From: Bispira polyomma
Lineage: Eukaryota
Reading direction: 5' to 3'
Assembly (NCBI GenBank): GCA_965649765.1
Contig: OZ287749.1
Location: 46,128,001 to 46,192,000, forward strand
Length of the DNA stretch: 64,000 nt
Part shown: piece after piece, positions 5,320-64,000 of the stretch
Position numbering within the stretch: position 1 is the first letter of the stretch
Layout: each line of letters starts with the position of its first letter
Notes under the pieces: model-generated
What the model saw: only the letters and a program-made list of their open reading frames with translations
What the model was told of the DNA's origin: nothing
Database searches by the model: none
Position numbers and translations under genes: made by a program

Positions 5320-8300
5320 TATGACTGTTTACTTATTTCCATGTTTTAAGAGTTGCACACCTTCATTATTCTTCTTTAATAAAGGGAATGTTATAGATAT
5401 TGGGTATGACAGCTTAAGTAAGTCTTTAAAGTTTTTAAAACCAGTAACACTTTCAGCTCTTTTTATATGCACTGGAAGTCTATTCCAAAGAAGCAGAGCA
5501 GCCACAGTAAATGAACGGTCACCATATCTATTGTATGATCTGTACTTAGTCAGTCTGTGCTGTTTTTAAGATCTTAAATGGCATGTTAGCTTGTAAGGCT
5601 TAACAACTTCTGACAAATATTAAGGTGCTGTATTGTGTAGACAGTTATAAATATGAACACAGATTTTGAAGTCAGTTCGATGATGAATGGGTAGCCAGTG
5701 TAGTGATCTCAATATGAGAATGACATGATCACAATATGCAGCTTTACTAATAATCTAAGCTGCAAAGTTTTTATTTTTCTGAAGTTTTGTAGTATGTGAC
5801 TTGTTTATTCCAAATAATAGATTATTTGCATAGTCGAGTCTAGATGTTACAAAAGCATAGATAATGGATTTACAGGCATCCTGACATAGATACTTTCTAA
5901 GGTGAGATTTATGCATCTGTAAGGAGCATACATGATTGAAACTTTAATGACAGAAACTTCTCCATGGATAAAGAAGAGAATACAGCTCCTTGGTTTCTAA
6001 CACTTGAGGCACTGATGATATTCACATCACCGACCGCCACAGAAATGTTGCTAGTATTTCTGAGATGATGTGGAGAGCCAACCAGTAGTACTTCTGTTTT
6101 ATCATCATTGAGTTTTAGTAGGTGACAAAGCATCCAATGTTTGATATCATTGACACATCCTGTTATCCTTGTTAGTTGATCATTCATTTCCTTGTTTTGA
6201 AAAAATGCATACAACTGGGTGTCATCAACATAGAAATGATAGTTAAGGTTATGTTGTCTAACAATGTCTCCAAGAGGTGTTCTGTATAAAGTAAATAAAA
6301 TAGGTCGAAGACCTAAACCTTGTGGAACCCCGAAATTTAATGTGGCAGGATAAGATGTAACCTTTTCAATTTGTACAGACTGTGTTCGATCACTGAGATA
6401 AGATTTGAACCAAGGTAGGGCTTTTCCACAGATTAGAAAACGTTTTTCTAAATGATTTATCAAAAGGGTGTGATCAATTGTATCGAAAGCTGCTGAGAGA
6501 TCCAGGAGAATAAGTGCATCCATCTTTTTTTTCATTCAGTGCCATAAGGAGATCATTTTGGACATGTAGTAAGGCTGTTCCAGTGGAGTGAAATTATCTG
6601 TATGCAGACCGCATGTGCTGGGTGAGATTATTTGAGTTTTAATGTTCAATGGTTTTGCTGGCAACCACTTTTTCAATGATTTTAGATATAAGTTATGAAT
6701 TTGACACAGGTCGGTAATTCTTAAACTGTTTTCGGTCTATTGATGCTTTTTTCAGGAGTGGTGACACAAGAGCCTTCTTCAGTTCAGTAGTGAGCATTCA
6801 GTAGTGAGCATTTTTTCAGTAGAGATGTAGGTATTGGATCTAGTAAACATGTTGCTGATGATACATTTTTTATAAGCTTTGTAACTTCAGTGATGTTAGC
6901 TGGATGAAAAGATGTGAGTGAAGTAACATCAGATGAACACATTTCAGGAATCTCTGTGTTGACGGTGTCTTTCATTGTCGACCGGAGTTTGATCATTTTG
7001 TTGATAAAGAATTCATTGAAATCCTTTGGCAGTACTAATCGGTTTAGATGGCAAGGAAGCATCTCCAATAAAATACAAAAGTTGTTTACAGGTGTCAAAT
7101 AGGTTATTTTTGTCATCTTTGGAATTTAGAATCTTTTTGCTAACAAACTCAGCTAATAGATGATTAATATATTTACTCTGATTTTTATATAATTTAAAAT
7201 CTGATAATAAGCCAGTCTTTTTCAATTTGCGTTCAACCCACTTTCGGATAACTTTCGCCTTTCTAATGTTTGCATTATACCATTGTGTATTTGGCTAAAC
7301 AGTCACTACTTTGAGTATTGACCACATTATATATGAGTATATCAAACTTTTTATATTGCTCAGTGGCTGGTATATAAGTATTAATAATTTAAATTTGTGA
7401 TATTTCCTGCTTAAACTTGATCATATCTAAGGATTATACATTCCTAAATGTCCAAGACTACCTGGTGGAGGTTTATTGTCAATAATGTTGAAAAGAATTG
7501 CAGCATGGTCAGATATTCCAGAATTGTGAACTGATACAGAATGAATAAGCGTGCATCACTCTTGGTAGTGACCAAATCCAGACATTGGCCAACAGAATGA
7601 GTTGGTTCATGAGTGTGAAGATCTAATCCAAAATCGTCAAGTATGGATACAAATTTAGCTGAGTTAGGACATACTGTATCTTCAAGGTGGAGATTGAGAT
7701 AACAAACCAAAAGTAAGTGACCATTATAAATGGAAAACTGGTGAATAGCAATGTGAAATCTTCAAAAAATTCGGTGACAGTAAAAACATTGGCCTTACTG
7801 GGTGGGGGCGATAGGCAACAATAACCCTTAAAAAGTTATTGTCCAGAGATACTGTGCGTTCTAGGAGTTCCAGAGTTTTAAAACTATGAATAGTATTGAT
7901 CTTAGACAATTTTATATTTTTTTTGAAAAGTAATCCAACTCTCTCACCACTTGCGTAAGTTCAGGGAATATGAACAAATGAGTATCCATCAGGAGTTAAA
8001 TCTCCAATGATATCCAAATCTCCATCCTGTTTTAGCCAAGTCTCTGTAATTGACAGAAAATCATAATCCCAAACAAAGCCAGCTATATATAGTGACTTTT
8101 TTTATTGAGTGAACATTCAAAAGAGCACACTGCAAGATTTTGTTGATCGATTGTGTACATTTAATTAGAATAATATTTCTCTGGAAAACTCCATTTTGTA
8201 TGTGTTTAGGAGAAGAACTCCTCAAAGTGACATTGCTTAAGGTATGAATTTGGTTTTGTTGTTAGTCTTTCCACCTTTAGAGCCAGTGACTGTTCTTTTT

Positions 8301-52849: not shown

Positions 52850-55800
52850 GGACCCGTAGGGAGAGTTTAACGAGGTCCTAGAACCAGGGCATTCCCGGCC
52901 ACCCTGGGGCTATTAAAAGTATCCGGCATCTGTTTGCGCGAACCTTGTTGATCACCTTGGTGATCAGAGTTGTTGGGGGTGATAACAATAGGCGTCCAGC
53001 CTGTCCCAAGAGATGTTGAGAGAGTCTACTGCCCAGACCCGAGGGTCTGGCAGGGGAGATACATAAACTGGAAGTTTGTTGTTCATGTTCGTGGCGAACA
53101 TGTCCACATGTGGAATGTACCACTGGTGACACAGGGTTTTGAAGATCTGAGGACAGGGGGACCACTCTTTCTGGATAAATTTATATTTCCTGGAGAGCAT
53201 CAGCGATGACGTTTCAACATCCGGGAATGTGACGTGCTCTGAGAGTCATATTTAAGTTGTGACACAGTGTTTGTATCCTCCAGATTAGGGCACACATCTC
53301 CAGTGATTGTGTGCCTCCCTACTTGTTGATGTAAGCTACCACTGATGAGTTGTCTGTCGATAGGAGAACTCTTTGACCGGTGCACTGAACTTGGAAGGCC
53401 TTGAGAGCCAGATAGACGACCTTTAGTTCTAAAACATTTATGTGAAGATCCTGTTTGCACACTGACTACTCGCCTCATGCTATGTCGCCATCCAAGTGAG
53501 CACCGTTTGAGGCATCTGTAAAGAGCAGCGTATTGTGCTCTAAAGGATGGAGAGAATCTCCCACTAACACATTGTTTGGATCCGGTCACCAAAGTAGGTG
53601 AGACTTAAGGAACGGGTCCACTGGAACGAGCTTGTTCAGAGTCTCGGGGAAGGTCCAGTGAGTCTTCAGGTGCCACTGTAGAGGGCTCATTTAAAGGGGA
53701 CCTCCTGGTACTAATTTCTCGGTCGAGGCTAGTAGACCGATGAGGGACATCCAAGTCCGAGCTGACACCTGAGAGGTTTGTAGTATCCGTTGGATTGTCT
53801 GTTGTAGCTTGTACCACCGGTCCGGAGTAGGAAGTACCAACCCCCTGTATAGGTCGTATTTGTAACCCACAATCGCAAAGTTCTGTGAGGGGGCAAGTTC
53901 CGACTTTTTGTAGTTTATGATCCAGCCTAAATCCATGATGAGGGTGGTTAAGGTCTCTGTGCTGGACTGGCATTGTTGGGCTGAAGGTGTTCTGATCAGC
54001 CAGTCGTCCAAGTACTGATGCATCCTCACTCCTAGGGAGAGGGCCATCAATTTCATTTCTTTGACTAGCAGTGTAAATTCGTGAGGGGCTGTTGCTAGCC
54101 CTGAACTGGTAGGACTTTCCTTTGTGGTGGCACCTGAGGTATTTCTGAGACCTCGGGTGAATGGGTATATCCAGATAAGCGTCCGTGAGGTGGAGAGATG
54201 TTACCCATTCCCCTTTCTGTAGAGCTTTGTCTTTTAATCCCCCTTTGTAGCCACTTACTACATATGAATAACGGGATAGAGGAGGTTTTTGCTGGAATGG
54301 AAGCTGATAGCTCTGAGTTATTATATCCAATTCCCTCTGAATTGTCCCTTTCTTCTTCCATTCGTGCACAAAATGAAGCAAACGCGCCCCAACCCCTAAG
54401 GGCGTTTGATCCAGTGGTTCTTCATTGTTTGTTTCCACTACCGTGGCCTCCACCGCAGAAGAAGGGCTTCTTGAAGCCTTCTCCAGATCCACCACCGCCG
54501 CCTCCACGGCCACCTCTGTTGGAGTCGTTACTCCCCGAGCCCCACCCCAAGGATAAGACCAGCCTCTGATCTCTTGTTTAAGCCCCCTTGGCTTTTATAA
54601 TTCCCTGAGGAGCTGCGGTGCTGAGTGTTATACCGCTTGTCACTCTTAATAGCGTCCTGCACCTTGGTGACAATGGCTGGGTCAAATAGGTTACCTGACT
54701 TGTAACAAGAGGACCTAAGGTCAGTTTTTAGGTGACCTGGTACAAATGGATGGAGATTGGTCAACACAGCATTCCTCCTAAAAAGGATTGTTGGCCATCA
54801 TGGTCATAATGTCCGCATGTAAATGTCCCATAACCCTGGACATGCTAATCATGATTCGATGTGCAACGGCCAGATTCTCCCCTCTTTAGGTAGGATCGGT
54901 TAATAATGGCTATTTCAGCCGCACGGGAGAAGTGAGAGTAGTGTTTGAGTAAGGCTAGCCACTCCTTTTGTCTCCCTCCCCACTGACTTATTTGCTTCTG
55001 GGACACATGGGTCTGGGCAGTTTGAGTATTTCCCCTTGTTGAAGGCGTCTCAACTCTCCACCAGTAGGGTGGGCTGTTGTAGCCAGAGATAGAGCCTTAA
55101 ACTTAGCTTCCAAGTCCAACCTAGGTAGTTTCAGTGAGGGAGGTGGGTTAGCTTCCTGCACTGAAGGCTGAGCCCGGAAAAGTGAGGTAGAGGAGTCCTC
55201 CTTAGGAGACTGTGTGGGTTCAAGGATGTCCAAAATTTTCCGTACAGTTTTTAATGTCTCTACATAAGTAAGGAAGTAAGTATACTCGTCCCTAGTGGTG
55301 GCTGCATTGTCATCTTCCGACCAAGCACAGTGAGAACGAGAAGAGGACTTCTCCCTTGGAGGAGAAGCGAGTGATTTTGCAATCTCCTTTGCCCGTTAAA
55401 AGGCGGCTAAATAGCCTGGGGAGTATTCTTCCTCGTTTCCGTCAGAGATTTCCCATGCCTCGCATTCCTGGTCCCGGTTGGGAAGAGCCCTTCGGGAGGC
55501 TGAGACCTTACTCTTATGTTTGTCTTTGACCGGTGCCTTAAGTACCGGTTCAGAGGAGTCCGACGAAGAGTCCGAGGATGGCGGTTCAGGTGTCCTCTTC
55601 CTCTTATGTTGGCTTTTTTTGTCTTTTTTGTACTTATGATGTTTACCATGCTTATGTCTACGATAATTCTTCTCATAATGAGTTAGTGTATCCGGAGACA
55701 AATATTCACTATTCTGAGGTTGGTCAGGTTTCTCTGACTGTTTATCCGGTTTTGATGCCGGTGCCTTATCCGGTTGAGAGGTATCCTTTGTGAGCTTTGT

Positions 55801-57270
55801 GTGGTGTGGCCTATAAAGGATATCCGGGTCTCAAACATGGGTTTCCCTGTAACCTCTGTCATGGCCTTGTTGTTGAGTAGACACTTCCAAAGTGTCACCA
55901 TACTGATCTGTGGCGTCCTCTTCAGGAGCCCAGCCGGTACGTGAGGAGACTGAGACACTGTCTCTAGAGGATCTTAAGTCCCTATTACGATTCTGACCCT
56001 TGAGAGCTGTAAGCTCACTCATTAAAGTTTCTAGCATCAATTCAGACTTAGCAGCCTGTTGTTGCATTAAGTTATCAGATCGTTGTTGTTGTAGATCCAT
56101 CTTGCAATGTAAAAAAAACAGTTCAGTCAAGAGCTGAGTTCTCAGGTCATCAACAAGGGCACGTGATTGTGTCATCGGTGTAGGAGGGGGAAGGGGGGTG
56201 GTGGTGGTAATTGCTGGATACCGGGCATGATCAGTACTGGTCCAAAGCCAGAAACATTTGTGAAGGGGATCTGAACGGGCCTCTACCCTTTGAGGGTTAG
56301 GTGGACTAGACTGTCCACCGGAAGCCAGAGATGAGGAAGGCTGGGTGTGAGCCAGTCTTTCTGGTTCGGCCAATAGTTCGTCCGCTCATTGGTCGAACAC
56401 GTTCATCGCCTCGGGTCCCTGACTGGTACCAGCTACGCCAGACCAGGCCGGAGAGTCAAGAAGTACTTCTTCTGGTGTGGCCAGAGGTGCCTTCTTTTTG
56501 TTCGACCTGCCCTGCGGCTGACTGGGTTAAGAACCACCTGAGGCCTAAGCTCTCGGGGGTTTAGGAGGCAGTGTAGGAATACACGCCAGGGCCAAATCAC
56601 TAGTATTATGGATACTGCAATTAGGGCCAGTAAAATGATAGGTGAGAGTTGTTGGGTGGACTGCTGGCCAGAGGAAGCTCTGTCCTCCACCGAGCCAAGC
56701 AAGCTCAGTAATACAAAAGTCCAGAGTACTGCACTTCTTCTCTCACTAGTAGAGGGTACATCTATCCTAATCAAATGCAACAAACTTGGGAACCAAGTAG
56801 CCATTTTATGTCTGTAGCAGTACCTGAGGCCAGAACTGAAAGTTTTGATGTAGGCTTAGATATCTGTCCAGTAAGAACCACAAAGGCTCAAAACGATCCA
56901 CATATAGAAGTAAAACTCCATAGTTGTAGATAATCCAATAATTCGTTGAGAAACTCAAGAAATATCTGTTTAAAGTTTGTGACACGAGACTCGATGTCTT
57001 CGAAATGGCGACCAGTAAAAGAATGGTCATTGTGCAGCTTCTCGCGCAGCGTCACGTGATGTTCCGGAAGGAACGAGTGTCGCCAGAGTCGACCAATCTG
57101 GCCCACCTTTTCTCTTAGGGTCTGGTCAGCACCGGCAGGTGCGCTACCAGTAAACATACAGTTTCACTGGGTAAGCAGTATTGCAATAAAAACAAACTTT
57201 TATAAATTTGGTGTTTTCAATATGTGCTTACTAAAATTAAATGATTTCCGGACATATGTTTTCGCTCGAT
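52850..57270 (-). mobile_element. Decayed, 3'-truncated DIRS1-like retrotransposon (gag-like ORF, RT, RNase H, MT-like domain; recombinase absent)
   Basis: VGARL..F..EW, DAY..IPIH, QYLDDWLI, GWIINYKKS; RNase H LFTDAS, HINVLELK, TDNSSVVAYINK, HIPG; DIRS-specific VDMFAT..NNKLPVYVSP..AVD....W..AY..PP..LIAP.WP...WF. Many frameshifts. Confidence 0.9.
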
Positions 57271-58259: not shown

Positions 58260-58372
58260 CGTATTCATGTCAGACAGAAGACAGGTGAGTGCAAATACTT
58301 CAAATAATCTAGGTTGTTATTGTAAATTTAACTCGAGAATAGATGGGTTAATTTTGGATCAAATCTAACGCA

Positions 58373-58735
58373 TATTATTATGAATATTTTAATGCACTTT
58401 ATTGATGCTAGGAATCTTTTAAAGCACAACAACAGAATGAGTCATCCAATCGTGTAGTCCATGGGCATAGCAAGGTCATAGGGAAAGGTGTCGGTGTGTG
58501 TAGCAGGGAACTGAGGTAAGGTTGAAAAGATAGGTTTGAGCTTTTTCTGTGTATCTACTGATCTGATGGATCGACCTGGAGACTGTTCCATAACAAGATA
58601 GCTGCAATGGAGAAGCTTGGGATCCCGCCAGAAAGTCTATTGCCTCTCCTCGGGTTACTAAAAGAGAGAAGGGAAGTGAGGTAGGAAAGACTACAGCCTT
58701 GAATGTGGTAACGTGAATTTTGAACAACATTCTGG
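58373..58735 (-). mobile_element. 3' end of an L2-clade LINE with 3' UTR and (ATT)n tail
   Basis: Reverse strand SFSIAAILLWNSL and QTYLF motifs, followed by ccttgctatgcccatggac...cctagcatcaataaag. Confidence 0.75.
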
Positions 58736-59268
58736 AGTGAATGGGAAGCCACTGTTGCTTTTTTCAGATAAGGAGTGATGTCAGTGCGACCGCCCAGGTG
58801 AAAAATCACCCTGCATAGGTAGTTTTAAATGGACAGGAGCTTTTTAATCTAAGAATAGGAATACAAAACGGAAGGATCATTTCAGGAAATATAATTAATT
58901 GATGGTAATGCTGGCTGTGTTTTTGCAATTAAGTAATAACAACTTCTTGTTGTGTGGCAATTTGACTGTAAATCCAATAAAATACCACTTGAAATAAATT
59001 GATTGTAACAATATTTACTAATTTATTCGACAAACTGATGCTGTTTCAGCAAAATAGTGATGCTGTTTCACTAAGTTATGTCATCAAGAAATACTTTTTT
59101 ATAAAATAATTTTTTTTTTCTAAATGGCAAACAGTAAGTTAAAGTGCCATTTTCAAAGTGTTAGTTCACAGTAAAAAAAGTTAACAGCTAACTTTCCCAC
59201 ACACATATCACTGGTTTATTGGATTTGATAAGTGGTACAAGTACCAAGTATAGGCTGATAGTGGCTCC

Positions 59269-60129
59269 CAGACATATGTGAAAAGTATTCGAATACAAAT
59301 GCAAATACTTTCAAATTTTACGAATGCGAATACAATTACACAGATTTTAAAAGTATTCGAATACGAATACATTTGCAATGTATTCATGAATGCATTCATG
59401 AATACTTTAAAGACGATTTAATTTACTCTATTTTATATTATAAGTATAGTATTATTAAAGAAAAAATTTAGTGTCTTAAATATTTACTCAAAATAACCTT
59501 TGACATTAATTTGCATTTACTTTAACACTAAGAACAACAATTTACTGTGTGTGTATGAGGCTAGGACAAAAAGCCTTACCTATCTAAATTGCAATTAGTT
59601 AAACCTACTAAGGGCCTATTGATAAAACAGACGCTTTTGATCATTTTAGAACTTATTTGTATTATGATTCAGCTTTTATTATACTTTGAACTGCACCGAA
59701 AAATGGAAAAAAAATGATAAAAACGTTTGCACAATCCTAATTATGAATAATAGCTTTATACACTTGTATTCAATAGTTATGTTTTATTCAATACACAAAG
59801 TTATTCCTTTAGAAAAAGTGAAGTAAATACCATATTTTAGCACAGGTCTATCATTGAATGTATTTCTCTTAATATGGTAAATATTGCTCTTACCTGCATT
59901 CATAAACATTAAGCCTTCAAATACAAGAAATAGTGACACTAGTCACACAAATGTTTAATTAGAAGCCTTTCTATTTAGTGGTCTGCCACCTATTGTATAT
60001 GTACCCTTAATACTCTTTATTATGCACACTGGTTAATCCTTTTATTTACTGGACAAATTTTAAAATGCTTTGGGTTTGATATTGATTGTGACAAATACGC
60101 ATATACGAATGTCGAATACCCCATGTCTG
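59269..60129. mobile_element. Non-autonomous hAT element (861 bp)
   Basis: CAGACAT...ATGTCTG termini, perfect 8-bp TSD GTGGCTCC (59261-59268, 60130-60137), subterminal (t)attcgaatac repeats. Confidence 0.88.
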
Positions 60130-60405
60130 GTGGCTCCTTGCATTGCCACTTAAAATGGTGGTTCTTTGTCATTGTGTTTTTTTACCAGTGGTAGTTTAAA
60201 GAACCTTGCTGGCATTAATAAATGTTCATCCTCAAGTATCTTTCTTCAGTTGAGGGAATGGCAACTGCAAGTGCTACTTGGCTGTACTTGTTAGGCAGTC
60301 AAGGAAAGGTTACCTGAATACTAGACAAAAGTATACAAATGTTTATAAATTTGAATATAAAACTAATACTTTAAATCTGTTTTTTTTTTTAATCTTCCAG
60401 ACAGA

Positions 60406-60466
60406 ATGCAGAAACTGATTTTATTTTTGCTGGTTCTCTGTCCCTTGGCAAACAGCAAAGCTATAG
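60406..60466 (+). CDS. Signal-peptide exon of a putative secreted peptide precursor (MQKLILFLLVLCPLANSKAI)
   Basis: Strong acceptor (T)n-aatcttccAG at 60400, ATG at 60406, basic-hydrophobic-small residue signal pattern, phase-1 donor G|GTTTGT. Confidence 0.65.
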
Positions 60467-60694
60467 GTTTGTGGTTTCATGTTTATTTATCATGCCAATA
60501 TTATTGACATACTTAACTCTGTCAACCCAACGCATGACTTGTTTTTACCAGATGTATTAGAACCTTGTCTCAAGAGTACTTGCATGGTGACCCATTTATG
60601 TCGGAAATCAGAAGACATTAATTTAAAGAAAAATTAAAGATGGCTTAAATATTTTGCTCAAAACTGGACTATAATATAGATCTTGTTTTTTTAG

Positions 60695-60870
60695 ATGTTG
60701 TTGCAACAAATCCCCTTGAGAAAGAAGTGAAACATATAACTTTTATACATGATCGAAATATACAAGAAGATGCAGTACATCAGAGTTTAATTCCAAGAGG
60801 GACGAAGAAAAGCAATGAAAAAGACAAGAAAAGTTATTCAAAAGAACCAGCATGCTGTACGGGGAAGTAA
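60695..60870 (+). CDS. Second exon of putative secreted peptide precursor, copy 1 (DVVATNPLEKE...KDKKSYSKEPACCTGK*)
   Basis: Acceptor cttgtttttttAG; phase 1 gives an open frame to TAA; frame conserved in the paralogue at 62883-63061. Confidence 0.65.
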
Positions 60871-61089
60871 ATTGGCCATACTATTAAAGATACTAAAAGT
60901 ACATGCTTTTAAATAAATAACTATACTGACTCTTATTTCACTTTTGAGTTCACCAATATCAGAAAATGGGAACGAAATCCCACTTATACAACATGATAAC
61001 TACTTTAAACTAGATTGAAAACAATTATTTTATAATCTAATCTAGTTTATTTAAGCATCAAATCTTTTATCGGGGAAAATTTAAAATGC

Positions 61090-61735
61090 CATAACACAAT
61101 AATGTTAGGCAAAATCCATCAAGTGAGGGGCATAACCAAGGTAATAAACAACAAGATTATCATTCAGCAAACAAAAAGGAGGACTCTGTTGGAAAAACTT
61201 GGTTTTAAATAAATCAGACTTCAGATGGAAAAGCTTTTTGCTGTCCTGATATAGAGTGGGAGATTATTCCAGCGAGGAGCCATATATAATTCTGAGTTCC
61301 CGAAATGGCTACTGTATAGATATCTAAACTTTGCATATTTTGTAACCTGAAGAAAGTTGTAATGATGGTTACTCATAGGAGTTACTCTGGATGAACATAT
61401 TTCGTCAGGTCCCTTTGTTTGACTTTGTGTCCAATGATAATGAACTCAGTTTTGTCTGGGTTTAATTTTAGCTTGATTGACGACATTCAGGATTTGATGT
61501 CTTTAAGAAACTTGTTTAGAGCATCCATTGGTGTAGCAAAAATTTGGGAGGTAAGAGATATGTAAAGCTGTATGTCTTTAGTATAACAGTAATATCTTAT
61601 GTTACTGTGGGCAGCAAAAATAGTGTTTAGGGGCTAGTATATAGAAAGAAAAGTATGGGTCCCAGGACAGAGCCTTATGAGACTCCAAAGTGTAGAGTAT
61701 TAAATTTGGATAAAAGAAAGCCAACCTTTACACCC
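61090..61735 (-). mobile_element. Decayed, internally deleted L2 LINE fragment
   Basis: LHFGVS*GSVLGP, degenerate YADD region (YTKDIQLY), KLKLNPDKTEF, RWNNLP. Confidence 0.75.
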
Positions 61736-62651
61736 TGTGAGCAGTTTGACAAAGATCATTCTCTGTTCCTTGAGAAAATCAAAGCCTCCAGATCTTAACA
61801 TATATCATTTACAAAAAATAGCTAAAACCAAATATTTTGAACAGGAGATGTCGTCAAAAGTGAGTAATACCTATGACGGATTTAAAAGAAAATGGTTGAC
61901 ATGGCATGCTAGCACTTCCGAAATATAATTTCTCTAATAGTAGTATAATATAGTCTACAGCATTGTGAACCTTTTTTTCAGAAATTAATTAAAAAGAATT
62001 ATTGTACATGTATAAAAGTATTACTTTTTTGCGTGTATATATACATACAGATGTAGATGTACCTAGTTGTGATAATAACAGTTATGTTTGTAACAACAAC
62101 ACGTTTATTTAAGCTTACTAAACAAGTACACTTCATATGTCTTTATATCTATTTCACAACACACGCTCGTTTGCTTCCGCTCTTACTCGAACTCGACTCA
62201 ATCAACTAGCCATTTATACCAACACACTAGTTAATTTGAACTTTTGCTTCTAATGTAATTAAATGACTGTCTGAAAATTATACAGTCTGTAAGTAGGTAA
62301 ATGACTGTATTGAAAATTATTAATATGAATGTCCTTTGTTGTTTTTTCATTGAGGTTGAATTTGTGTCATATTTCTGTATTATATTTATGTAAACCAAAA
62401 AGAACAATAAAAAATAAAAAAAAATAGCAAAGCCATAGGTTTGTGTTTTCATGTTTCTTAGTCATGCTTAATTATTGATATAACTACTTCTGCCCAAACA
62501 TTATATCCCTTGAATTTACTAGATCTATTGGGTTTATAGAATTTGATACCTTGTTTCATTAGCAGTTGCATGGTGAGCCATTTATGTCTGAAATCAGCAG
62601 ACATTTCTTTAAGAAAAATTAAAGGTGGTTCAAATACTACACAAAATACAT

Positions 62652-62842
62652 TGTTATTATTATGTATTTTTAACACGCTTTATTGATGCTAGGCATCTTC
62701 TAAAGTGCAACAGCAGAATCAATGATCTAATCGTAAAGTCCATGGGCATAGCAAGGTTGTAAGGGTAGGGGGGTTCACGGCTGGTTAATCAGCAAGCAAC
62801 CAGACCGGGGGTTAACCTACCCCGTAGCAAGGGGCACAATTC
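62652..62842 (-). mobile_element. SINE-like fragment bearing the same 3' tail as the 58.4-kb L2, inserted in the intron of peptide-gene copy 2
   Basis: About 110 bp shared with 58373-58490, then non-coding sequence unlike the LINE. Absent from the copy 1 intron. Confidence 0.65.
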
Positions 62843-62882
62843 CCTTTCATGCTTAGCTATAATATAGGTCTTGGTATTTTAG

Positions 62883-63061
62883 ATGTTGTTGCAACAAATC
62901 TTTATAAACAAGCATTGAAACATACAACACTTATACATGATCAAAATATACAAGTAGATGCAGTATATCAGAGTTTAATCCTAAAAGGTGCGAAGATAAG
63001 AAATCAGAAAGCAGACAAGAAAAGTTATTCAAAAGAACATGCATGCTGTTTGGGGGAGTAG
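62883..63061 (+). CDS. Second exon of putative secreted peptide precursor, copy 2 (DVVATNLYKQA...KADKKSYSKEHACCLGE*)
   Basis: Acceptor gtattttAG. Aligns to 60695-60870 with only one 3-nt indel and the same stop position. The upstream signal exon survives only as ..agcaaagccatag|gtttgt (about 62426-62443). Confidence 0.55.
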
Positions 63062-63399
63062 ATATTGGTCCAAAAGGAACATGGTAGCAGTATATGGTAT
63101 TGAACAAATGAATATTCATTCTTGTTGTTCTTGTCAGTTAACCAATGTTACAAAAACTGGATCACACCCAAATCTATACATCATATATTAGTAACCTGTT
63201 GAAACTGCAGATTTGTGCTCAGCCATGGCATAGAGGAAGCAATTGCTTTATATATGTAGATATTTTGATTCAAAATTATGTTGATATAGGTTTTATGAGA
63301 AAAACTATGGAGCCAATACATCTAATATATCTTATTAGTCTTTGCTGGTGCTATATCTCAAAAATATCTATATCTTACATATTTGCAAATGTTAGTTCA

Positions 63400-63581
63400 G
63401 TGAAAGCATGATGGAATAGAAATGACTTGAGTCATCTAGTCCTATATCTGATCTAGTCAGCTTATCAGTTAGAGTATTGTAATATTGCATGGTGAAAGCA
63501 TGGTGGAATAGAAATGACTTGAGTCATCTAGTCCTATATCTGATCTAGTCAGCTTATCAGTTAGAGTATTGTAATATTGCA
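63400..63581. repeat. Near-perfect tandem duplication, period 92 bp
   Basis: gtgaaagcatg.tggaatagaaatgacttgagtc...gtaatattgca occurs twice. Confidence 0.92.
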
Positions 63582-63840
63582 CTTCCCATTATAGAAACCT
63601 TTGCTTTTACTAAGAGTGTATTATCGAACATATACTAAGCCATCAGTACAACATGTACAATGTGCCTGCAATAAATTATATAAATAAATCTTTATTTCAG
63701 ACACGGAATGTCTCGAAATATATGCTTTTTTATAATTTAGGAACATAAAGGAAGGCCCTGGGATGCAGTGGTAATAAAGTTTCAGTCCAACAATATCACC
63801 AGGAACCAATACTGTTAAAAGGGCAACTTAATATAGATCA

Positions 63841-64000
63841 ATTTAGTTGGGTTTTCATGTCGCCTTCAACAGCTTAGGTCATATCATAAAGGCCAGAATC
63901 AATGGTAGAGGAAACCATTGTAAATCACTGGCCTATGGCAAGTACCTGACAAACTATCCCACACAAAGGAATCAACAGGAATCTAACCCACACTGGTGAG
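63841..64000 (-). mobile_element. SINE family B, runs off the window end
   Basis: Reverse complement reads ctcaccagtgtgggttag...tgtgggatagtttgtcaggtacttgcc...gacctaagctgttgaaggcgacatgaaaacccaac. Confidence 0.75.

Follow-up and report, generated by a model that had tools for sequence, protein, structure and literature searches.

A candidate secreted pre-pro-peptide gene beside its decaying copies in a local array of Bispira polyomma

The 64,000-nucleotide (nt) stretch of Bispira polyomma DNA that we analysed (GenBank assembly GCA_965649765.1, contig OZ287749.1, positions 46,128,001 to 46,192,000 of the forward strand; here called the window) carries near its end a short two-exon gene model, unit A, whose predicted product has a signal-like leader, a pro-region, one conserved dibasic site and a C-terminal peptide with two adjacent cysteines. 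Unit A is one of four full units (A to D), each of which is followed by a partial copy (A' to D'). The anatomy of these copies, their history, their lesions and a local constraint on the segment that encodes the dibasic site and the peptide can all be read from the DNA itself. We consider, with moderate confidence, that unit A may be a lineage-specific secreted pre-pro-peptide gene in a birth-and-death array, one that was functional in the ancestor of the array and of which A is the surviving copy.

Gene model of unit A

The coding part of exon 1 (60406-60466, plus strand) consists of MQKLILFLLVLCPLANSKAI, translated from 60406-60465, and one further base, which begins the next codon. Then comes a phase-1 intron of 228 nt (60467-60694, plus strand) that opens with GT at 60467, in the donor GTTTGT, and closes with a T-rich tract and a TAG acceptor whose AG lies at 60693-60694; the G at 60466 and the AT at 60695-60696 together form the split codon G/AT for Asp. 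The coding part of exon 2 (60695-60870, plus strand) supplies the pro-region, the DKK site, the peptide SYSKEPACCTGK and a TAA stop at 60868-60870, and positions 60697-60870 translate to VVATNPLEKE...KKSYSKEPACCTGK before the stop (the same C-terminal end can also be given as DKKSYSKEPACCTGK). The two parts, 61 + 176 nt, make 79 codons with the stop and a product of 78 residues. A first-pass annotation of the window had proposed this two-exon GT-AG, phase-1 model, and exon-wise translation and the splice dinucleotides bear it out; the well-formed precursor layout that it described is likewise found, since ATG, signal-like leader, phase-1 intron, KK site, stop and AATAAA are all present in unit A. 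By eye we saw no convincing conserved internal donor from which exon 2 might splice onward into a larger protein.

The leader of unit A resembles a signal peptide, with an n-region MQK, an 11-residue hydrophobic core LILFLLVLCPL and A-N-S at positions -3 to -1, and with respect to the N-terminal signal of prohormone precursors (PMC3890597) it fits the n/h/c-region and -3/-1 rules by heuristic. A strict heuristic, which asks for a basic n-region, an uncharged core of 10 residues whose mean hydropathy is 2.6 or more, and small residues at -3 and -1, is passed by the ATG at 60406 and by no other ATG on either strand of the 64-kb window (128 kb of strand); because its criteria were written after the sequence was seen, this result is supportive but not independent. 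Prohormone precursors are also recognized by a basic site in the absence of other domains (PMC3890597), and here DKK is kept in A, A', B and D, is the sole basic site kept in all open copies, and is accompanied by no Pfam family above threshold. The exon 2 product of A has no Pfam match at all, and that of A' has only a match to Baculo_8kDa below the cutoff (16 bits against 25), which we rejected as a chance match.

Upstream of unit A the reading frame is closed 13 codons before the ATG. A T-run followed by cttccag/ACAGA (60381-60405, plus strand) is present in all four full units, and as the acceptor-like cttccag stands directly before the ATG, an upstream non-coding exon is possible. A TATAAAA motif (60356-60362, plus strand) lies 44-50 nt 5' of the ATG and is a possible core promoter; it is present in unit A and, as a similar motif, in C, is mutated in B and D, and constitutes weak evidence of a promoter, being easily found by chance in AT-rich DNA (the window has ~33% G+C). 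Chance would as easily supply the AATAAA at 60912-60917 (plus strand), 42 nt 3' of the stop, which is kept in units A, B and D; none follows the A' exon. Unique DNA starts only ~200 bp 5' of the candidate gene, and further upstream are high-copy repeats (58298-60070; summed contig depth ~10^4) and a run of N at ~58.0-58.3 kb of the window.

The array and its history

Whole-genome searches of the 1.035-Gb assembly with the protein sequence of exon 2, the DNA of exon 1, the DNA of the entire unit and a four-exon-product profile all placed the family copies only at 46188-46225 kb of this contig, within 37 kb; the profile gave nothing outside the cluster, two matches with an expectation value (E) >4 being disregarded. 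Further paralogues, for which the first-pass annotation had proposed a genome-wide check, do therefore exist, eight copies in total and in a local array only. In numbering that extends that of the window, the full units lie at 60380 (A), 67173 (B), 87989 (C) and 96292 (D), and the partial units at 62422 (A'), 68471 (B'), 88779 (C') and 96863 (D'). The repeated segment is ~7 kb long and otherwise consists mainly of transposon debris. Between units B and C, two stretches of 1.76 kb (contig 46197797-46199555 and 46206181-46207930) are 97% identical and probably represent a young transposon or a recent duplication.

Every signal is intact in copy A. In B the ATG has become ATA and a TAG codon stands directly after CC, exon 2 being open until three codons from its end; in C the donor GT has become AT and a 620-bp deletion takes out exon 2; and in D the acceptor AG has become AA, a 27-nt in-frame deletion is present and the first Cys is replaced by Tyr. 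An alternative AG 18 nt upstream in D would, speculatively, hold the frame. Among the partial copies, A' is headless with an open frame, B' has several frameshifts, C' has a 2-nt insertion and stops, and D' is truncated. Since the lesions of B, C and D are all different they are derived, and the common ancestor of A to D had the complete structure. The earlier description of a fast-evolving family is not supported by this evidence, which shows one intact gene and seven broken or headless copies, all within the 37 kb.

A tree built on intron plus exon 2 takes the form ((A,C),(B,D)) and ((A',C'),(B',D')) with a long branch between the two, from which it follows that the full/partial pair arose first and that the two-unit block was duplicated afterwards. 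An old fragment of a non-LTR (long terminal repeat) retrotransposon, a long interspersed nuclear element (LINE), lies at 61380-61790 (minus strand), where it adjoins the truncated exon-1 remnant of A'; it is decayed, carries a reverse-transcriptase motif of the GSVLGPILF type and a motif of the LNPDKTE type, is common to units A, B and C, and marks the breakpoint at which the partial copies lost their head. In B' and C', ~35 nt from the 3' part of exon 1 remain and abut a minus-strand non-LTR retrotransposon fragment. To judge by this junction, the partial copies appear to descend from a tandem copy that was formerly complete and lost its 5' half there. We suggest that an early tandem copy lost its 5' half to the LINE fragment and so gave rise to the primed copies, that the full/partial pair was then duplicated twice, which would produce the two matching trees, and that B, C and D were disabled later by independent lesions. 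Capture of the exons from another gene, or their carriage as transposon cargo, was rejected as an origin because exon 1 with its flanks is found only in the four units, and a processed pseudogene was rejected because the intron is kept in all copies.

The headless exon copy A'

The exon-2 copy A' (62883-63061, plus strand) has an AG acceptor at 62881-62882 and a frame that is open to a TAG, and it is without a signal exon of its own. It translates to VVATNLYKQ...KKSYSKEHACCLGE before the stop (the same C-terminal end can also be given as DKKSYSKEHACCLGE) and differs from the A exon at 30 of 176 aligned bases and by one in-frame 3-nt indel; acceptor, KK site, CC and stop position are all kept in both, which confirms the downstream paralogous exon that had been reported previously. 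What was said of the duplicated intron (62439-62882, plus strand) also holds, for relative to the intron of A it has indels of 1, 15 and 1 nt and a 206-bp insertion (62652-62857) of very high copy number. The summed contig depth of this insertion is >5x10^5 as compared with ~20 for unique DNA, which indicates a SINE-like (short interspersed nuclear element) sequence with tens of thousands of copies; the present copy matches no Rfam or tRNA family. The claim that the gene as such is tandemly duplicated stands only in part. The second exon copy exists, but its homology to unit A begins only 12-13 nt before the donor (exon-1 remnant at 62426-62438, plus strand, followed by GT at 62439-62440), so that A' has neither start codon nor signal exon, and the locus comprises one intact model and a headless exon. 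The A' exon is either a relic or an alternative last exon.

A later insertion of ~620 bp of moderately repeated DNA (61800-62420), specific to A' and flanked by imperfect direct repeats of 12-14 bp, splits the exon-1 remnant. An apparent allele without the SINE and with an extra AT proved to be paralogue C', mapping at 90% likeness. On the 3' side of the A' exon, at 63417-63560, a segment of ~85 bp is locally duplicated in tandem.

Local constraint on the predicted cleavage site and peptide

The block that had been designated beforehand, by hypothesis, as cleavage site plus peptide (60821-60859, plus strand; D-K-K-S-Y-S-K-E-P-A-C-C, the DKK-SYSKEPACC block) is better conserved than any other part of the unit in A, B, D and A'. 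In these four copies it differs from the consensus at 5 of 156 positions (3%), as against 155 of 1382 (11%) elsewhere in the intron and pro-region (Fisher p = 0.0008), and among 30-nt windows of intron plus exon 2 the least changed lies here. The same block shows no conservation in B' and C', which are dead and differ there at 10 of 76 positions. For the exon as a whole no selection is demonstrable; local constraint is visible on the KK-peptide block. A drifting pro-region with a conserved C-terminal peptide is a hormone-like rather than a toxin-like pattern.

The way in which the exons have stayed open was examined by neutral simulation. Three of the seven exon-2 copies are fully open; on the inferred tree, at least 3 open copies are expected with P = 0.02-0.10, and the probability that A is fully intact (simulated with concatenated exons) is 0.03-0.10 at t = 0.08-0.10, the branch length of A being estimated at ~0.09-0.10. 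Indels in the open exon-2 copies are confined to 3 nt (A) and 27 nt (D), both in-frame; a count by eye in the copy alignment gives about nine indel events for the intron, seven of which are not multiples of 3. Conservation among copies almost reaches that of the exon ends in one segment of the intron (60585-60652, around ...GACATTAATTTAAAGAAAAATTAAAG...), in which neither an RNA family nor an obvious hairpin was found.

The predicted peptide

The transcription, splicing, secretion, cleavage and amidation of the A product are predictions from its sequence. The signal peptide would be removed after A-N-S and the pro-region cut at the single conserved dibasic site D-K-K; the C-terminal peptide set free by this cut would be 9-12 residues long and contain the conserved core SYSKEPACC, which in A is followed by T-G-K and so might be amidated. 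Amidation had been put forward as a feature of the family, and this is not borne out. A C-terminal Gly plus basic residue is a modification hallmark of prohormone precursors (PMC3890597), and the GK signal is found only in A (T-G-K-stop) and D (M-G-K-stop); the A' product closes with L-G-E-stop, and in B the stop follows CC at once. The position next to CC is hypervariable (T in A, L in A', a stop in B and M in D). A conotoxin-like pattern does not fit either, the mature block being the most conserved and having two cysteines only, of which D has Tyr in place of one. To extend amidation and a vicinal disulfide to the entire family is unsupported extrapolation, and the state of the adjacent cysteines, be it a vicinal disulfide, an intermolecular disulfide or free thiols, is a matter of conjecture.

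The fullest form of the proposal would have A yield a lineage-restricted decapeptide amide, SYSKEPACCT-NH2, with its CC closed in an eight-membered vicinal disulfide ring or joined in an intermolecular dimer, and with the headless exon serving as an alternative last exon for a second, non-amidated isoform, the whole being a newly born signalling or defence peptide beside its decaying paralogues. We give this combination very little credence.

Weighing of the alternatives

A number of findings weigh against unit A as a surviving gene, and they are given here together with the alternatives that they favour. The whole array may be dead: the ancestral peptide gene would have been real, all copies including A would now be pseudogenes or unexpressed relics, and the exons of A and A' would be open merely for want of time. 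We think this rather unlikely, although much of the evidence agrees with it. Divergence of exon and intron is equal, with p-distances for exon 2 and intron, respectively, of 0.136 and 0.140 (A-B), 0.141 and 0.157 (A-D) and 0.112 and 0.118 (B-D); the values for A-A' are 0.170 and 0.243. Exon 2 is thus not slower than the intron among A, B and D, and the three-way conservation profile is flat over 60330-60960. An exon no less divergent than its intron, with frameshifted paralogues, was named in the first-pass annotation as what would tell against its own reading, and both the equal divergence in A, B and D and the frameshifts in the paralogues count in that direction. Ratios of non-synonymous to synonymous change (dN/dS, NG86) range from 0.41 to 0.89 except for one pair at 2.4, and the synonymous sites number only 28-36. 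In the pro-region the A lineage has changed in a proportion of ~3.5 non-synonymous to 1 synonymous (a hand count against the B/D/A' consensus, with no script), which is near neutral, dN/dS being near 1. Seven of the eight copies are broken or headless, with independent knock-outs in three of the four full units. The exon of A' is still open although this copy has been headless since before the unit duplication, which shows that chance retention does happen in the array; and for at least one of the four units to be intact under neutrality P is 0.12-0.35 at t = 0.08-0.10, with values up to 0.54 at t = 0.06. On the other side, the KK-peptide block is kept in A, B, D and A', whereas B' and C' have not kept it, which argues for selection until recently, and for three to four exon copies to be open together p is ~0.02-0.1 under neutrality.

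The searches for protein and RNA traces are also in keeping with a dead array. A word-index protein search with exon 2 over 5.8 billion clusters (the exons were searched separately, not as the joined 78-residue product) found no protein that shares words with it. A full HMMER scan of 1.84 billion representatives returned four matches (E 4e-6 to 6e-4), which were rejected as homologues because they are long, internally repetitive proteins matched via reiterated short motifs such as DAVYQSL. The ESM Atlas gave no usable match, Rfam gave none on 60000-64000, and a degenerate back-translated pattern of the KK-peptide matched the metagenome contigs once, out of frame inside a bacterial open reading frame (ORF), which we discarded as a chance match and not a relative. 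Prohormone precursors are further supported by homology, conservation across species, neuronal expression or mass-spectrometry evidence (PMC3890597); of these, homology was not found in word index, HMMER, Atlas or metagenomes. Among the sequencing runs searched for the locus there was no RNA run; the three runs with the locus are DNA unitigs, which match A exactly and probably derive from the species or sample of the assembly itself.

The same lack of homologues and of an RNA run would be expected if unit A had never been a gene, and were a chance open frame with a T-rich, hydrophobic-looking leader in segmentally duplicated AT-rich DNA. Such frames are easily come by here: ORFs of at least 50 codons are abundant in the region (30 in 8 kb), and under loose criteria 23 ATGs in the window give some model of a hydrophobic leader with a second exon. 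That the donor GTTTGT of unit A is sub-optimal at +3 also weighs against a surviving gene. We nevertheless consider a chance frame quite improbable, since the strict heuristic, post hoc though its criteria are, selects only 60406, the open copies have in-frame indels only, the DKK site and, selectively, the predicted peptide block are conserved, and the AATAAA recurs 42 nt past the stop in A, B and D.

It is also conceivable that the locus is one gene with two alternative last exons, in which exon 1 would join either 60695 or, if the first poly(A) site is passed over, 62883, with products ending in ...SYSKEPACCT-amide and ...SYSKEHACCLGE. In its favour, A' keeps a good acceptor, an open frame, KK, CC and the stop position after ~17% substitutions, and the peptide block is conserved in A' as well. 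We hold this to be very improbable, because the equivalent exons of B, C and D are all frameshifted or truncated, AATAAA is absent after A', the would-be intron contains both the SINE and the 620-bp insertion, and an A' exon open by chance (~0.06 per copy, a back-of-envelope figure from the simulation rates) is not an improbable outcome. A single secreted pre-pro-peptide gene, ancestrally functional and surviving in unit A, is thus the reading that we prefer.

Comparison with known peptide precursors

A close parallel in layout is PCNamide of Platynereis dumerilii, a 63-residue precursor that runs from a signal through a pro-region and a KKR site to a two-Cys peptide at the C-terminus, ...CIPCNGK (PMC3890597). 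Like it, unit A would encode a very small protein with a signal, a short pro-region, a basic site and a single C-terminal peptide with two Cys and then G-K-stop; the two have no sequence similarity, however, and the cysteines are adjacent in A but spaced in PCNamide. The cysteines of the peptides named CCAamide and CCWamide are also spaced and not adjacent, despite what the names might suggest (PMC3890597). Small orphan proneuropeptide candidates of Platynereis, restricted to the species or to annelids, have transcriptome or mass-spectrometry support (Conzelmann et al. 2013, PMC3890597). Unit A shares with them the lack of a Pfam domain and of orthologues beyond the lineage, and differs from them in that it is known from genome sequence alone, lies amid a pseudogene array and has an amidation signal that is not kept among copies.

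Among venom components, the kappa-hexatoxins of the spider Shiva superfamily have a vicinal disulfide that is extremely rare and functionally critical (PMC4029134). Unit A resembles venom and defence pre-pro-peptides (conotoxin superfamilies, Shiva) in its signal-pro-mature layout and in belonging to a tandem birth-and-death family, and it too has adjacent Cys, although their oxidation state is conjectural whereas those of kappa-hexatoxin form the vicinal disulfide. In toxin superfamilies the signal is conserved and the mature part, built on a framework of 6-8 Cys, is hypervariable; in unit A, by contrast, conservation is highest in the mature block, which has only two Cys, and the pro-region drifts. 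No homology was found.

Young orphan genes accompanied by tandem pseudogene copies are a general phenomenon, and unit A is like them in having no homologues detected, a short ORF, decayed neighbours and, for most of its length, purifying selection that is weak or absent. Its full set of secretory-precursor signals together with a constrained peptide block points to a once-functional gene rather than a proto-gene.

If A is expressed, it would add an unannotated, lineage-restricted secreted peptide to an annelid group whose peptide repertoire is poorly known, and the 37 kb would display a full gene life cycle, from duplication through 5' truncation by a retrotransposon and re-duplication to knock-outs of start, donor, acceptor and Cys; should A turn out not to be expressed, what remains is an ordinary segmental duplication in decay. 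In either case it illustrates a limit of gene finding from sequence: a single copy that looks perfect needs its paralogues checked before a family is claimed.

Other features of the window

An uninterrupted ORF of 925 amino acids lies at 37942-40719 (minus strand), ~20 kb upstream of the array. It matches both PF14924, the N-terminal domain of MAP10 (E = 2e-10), and PF14925, and has the appearance of an intronless MAP10-like gene. A reverse-transcriptase ORF (RVT_1) lies at 5909-6535 (minus strand). Two G+C-richer ORFs of 302 and 180 amino acids, at 53605-54513 and 55831-56373 (both minus strand), have no Pfam match and are probably transposon-derived.

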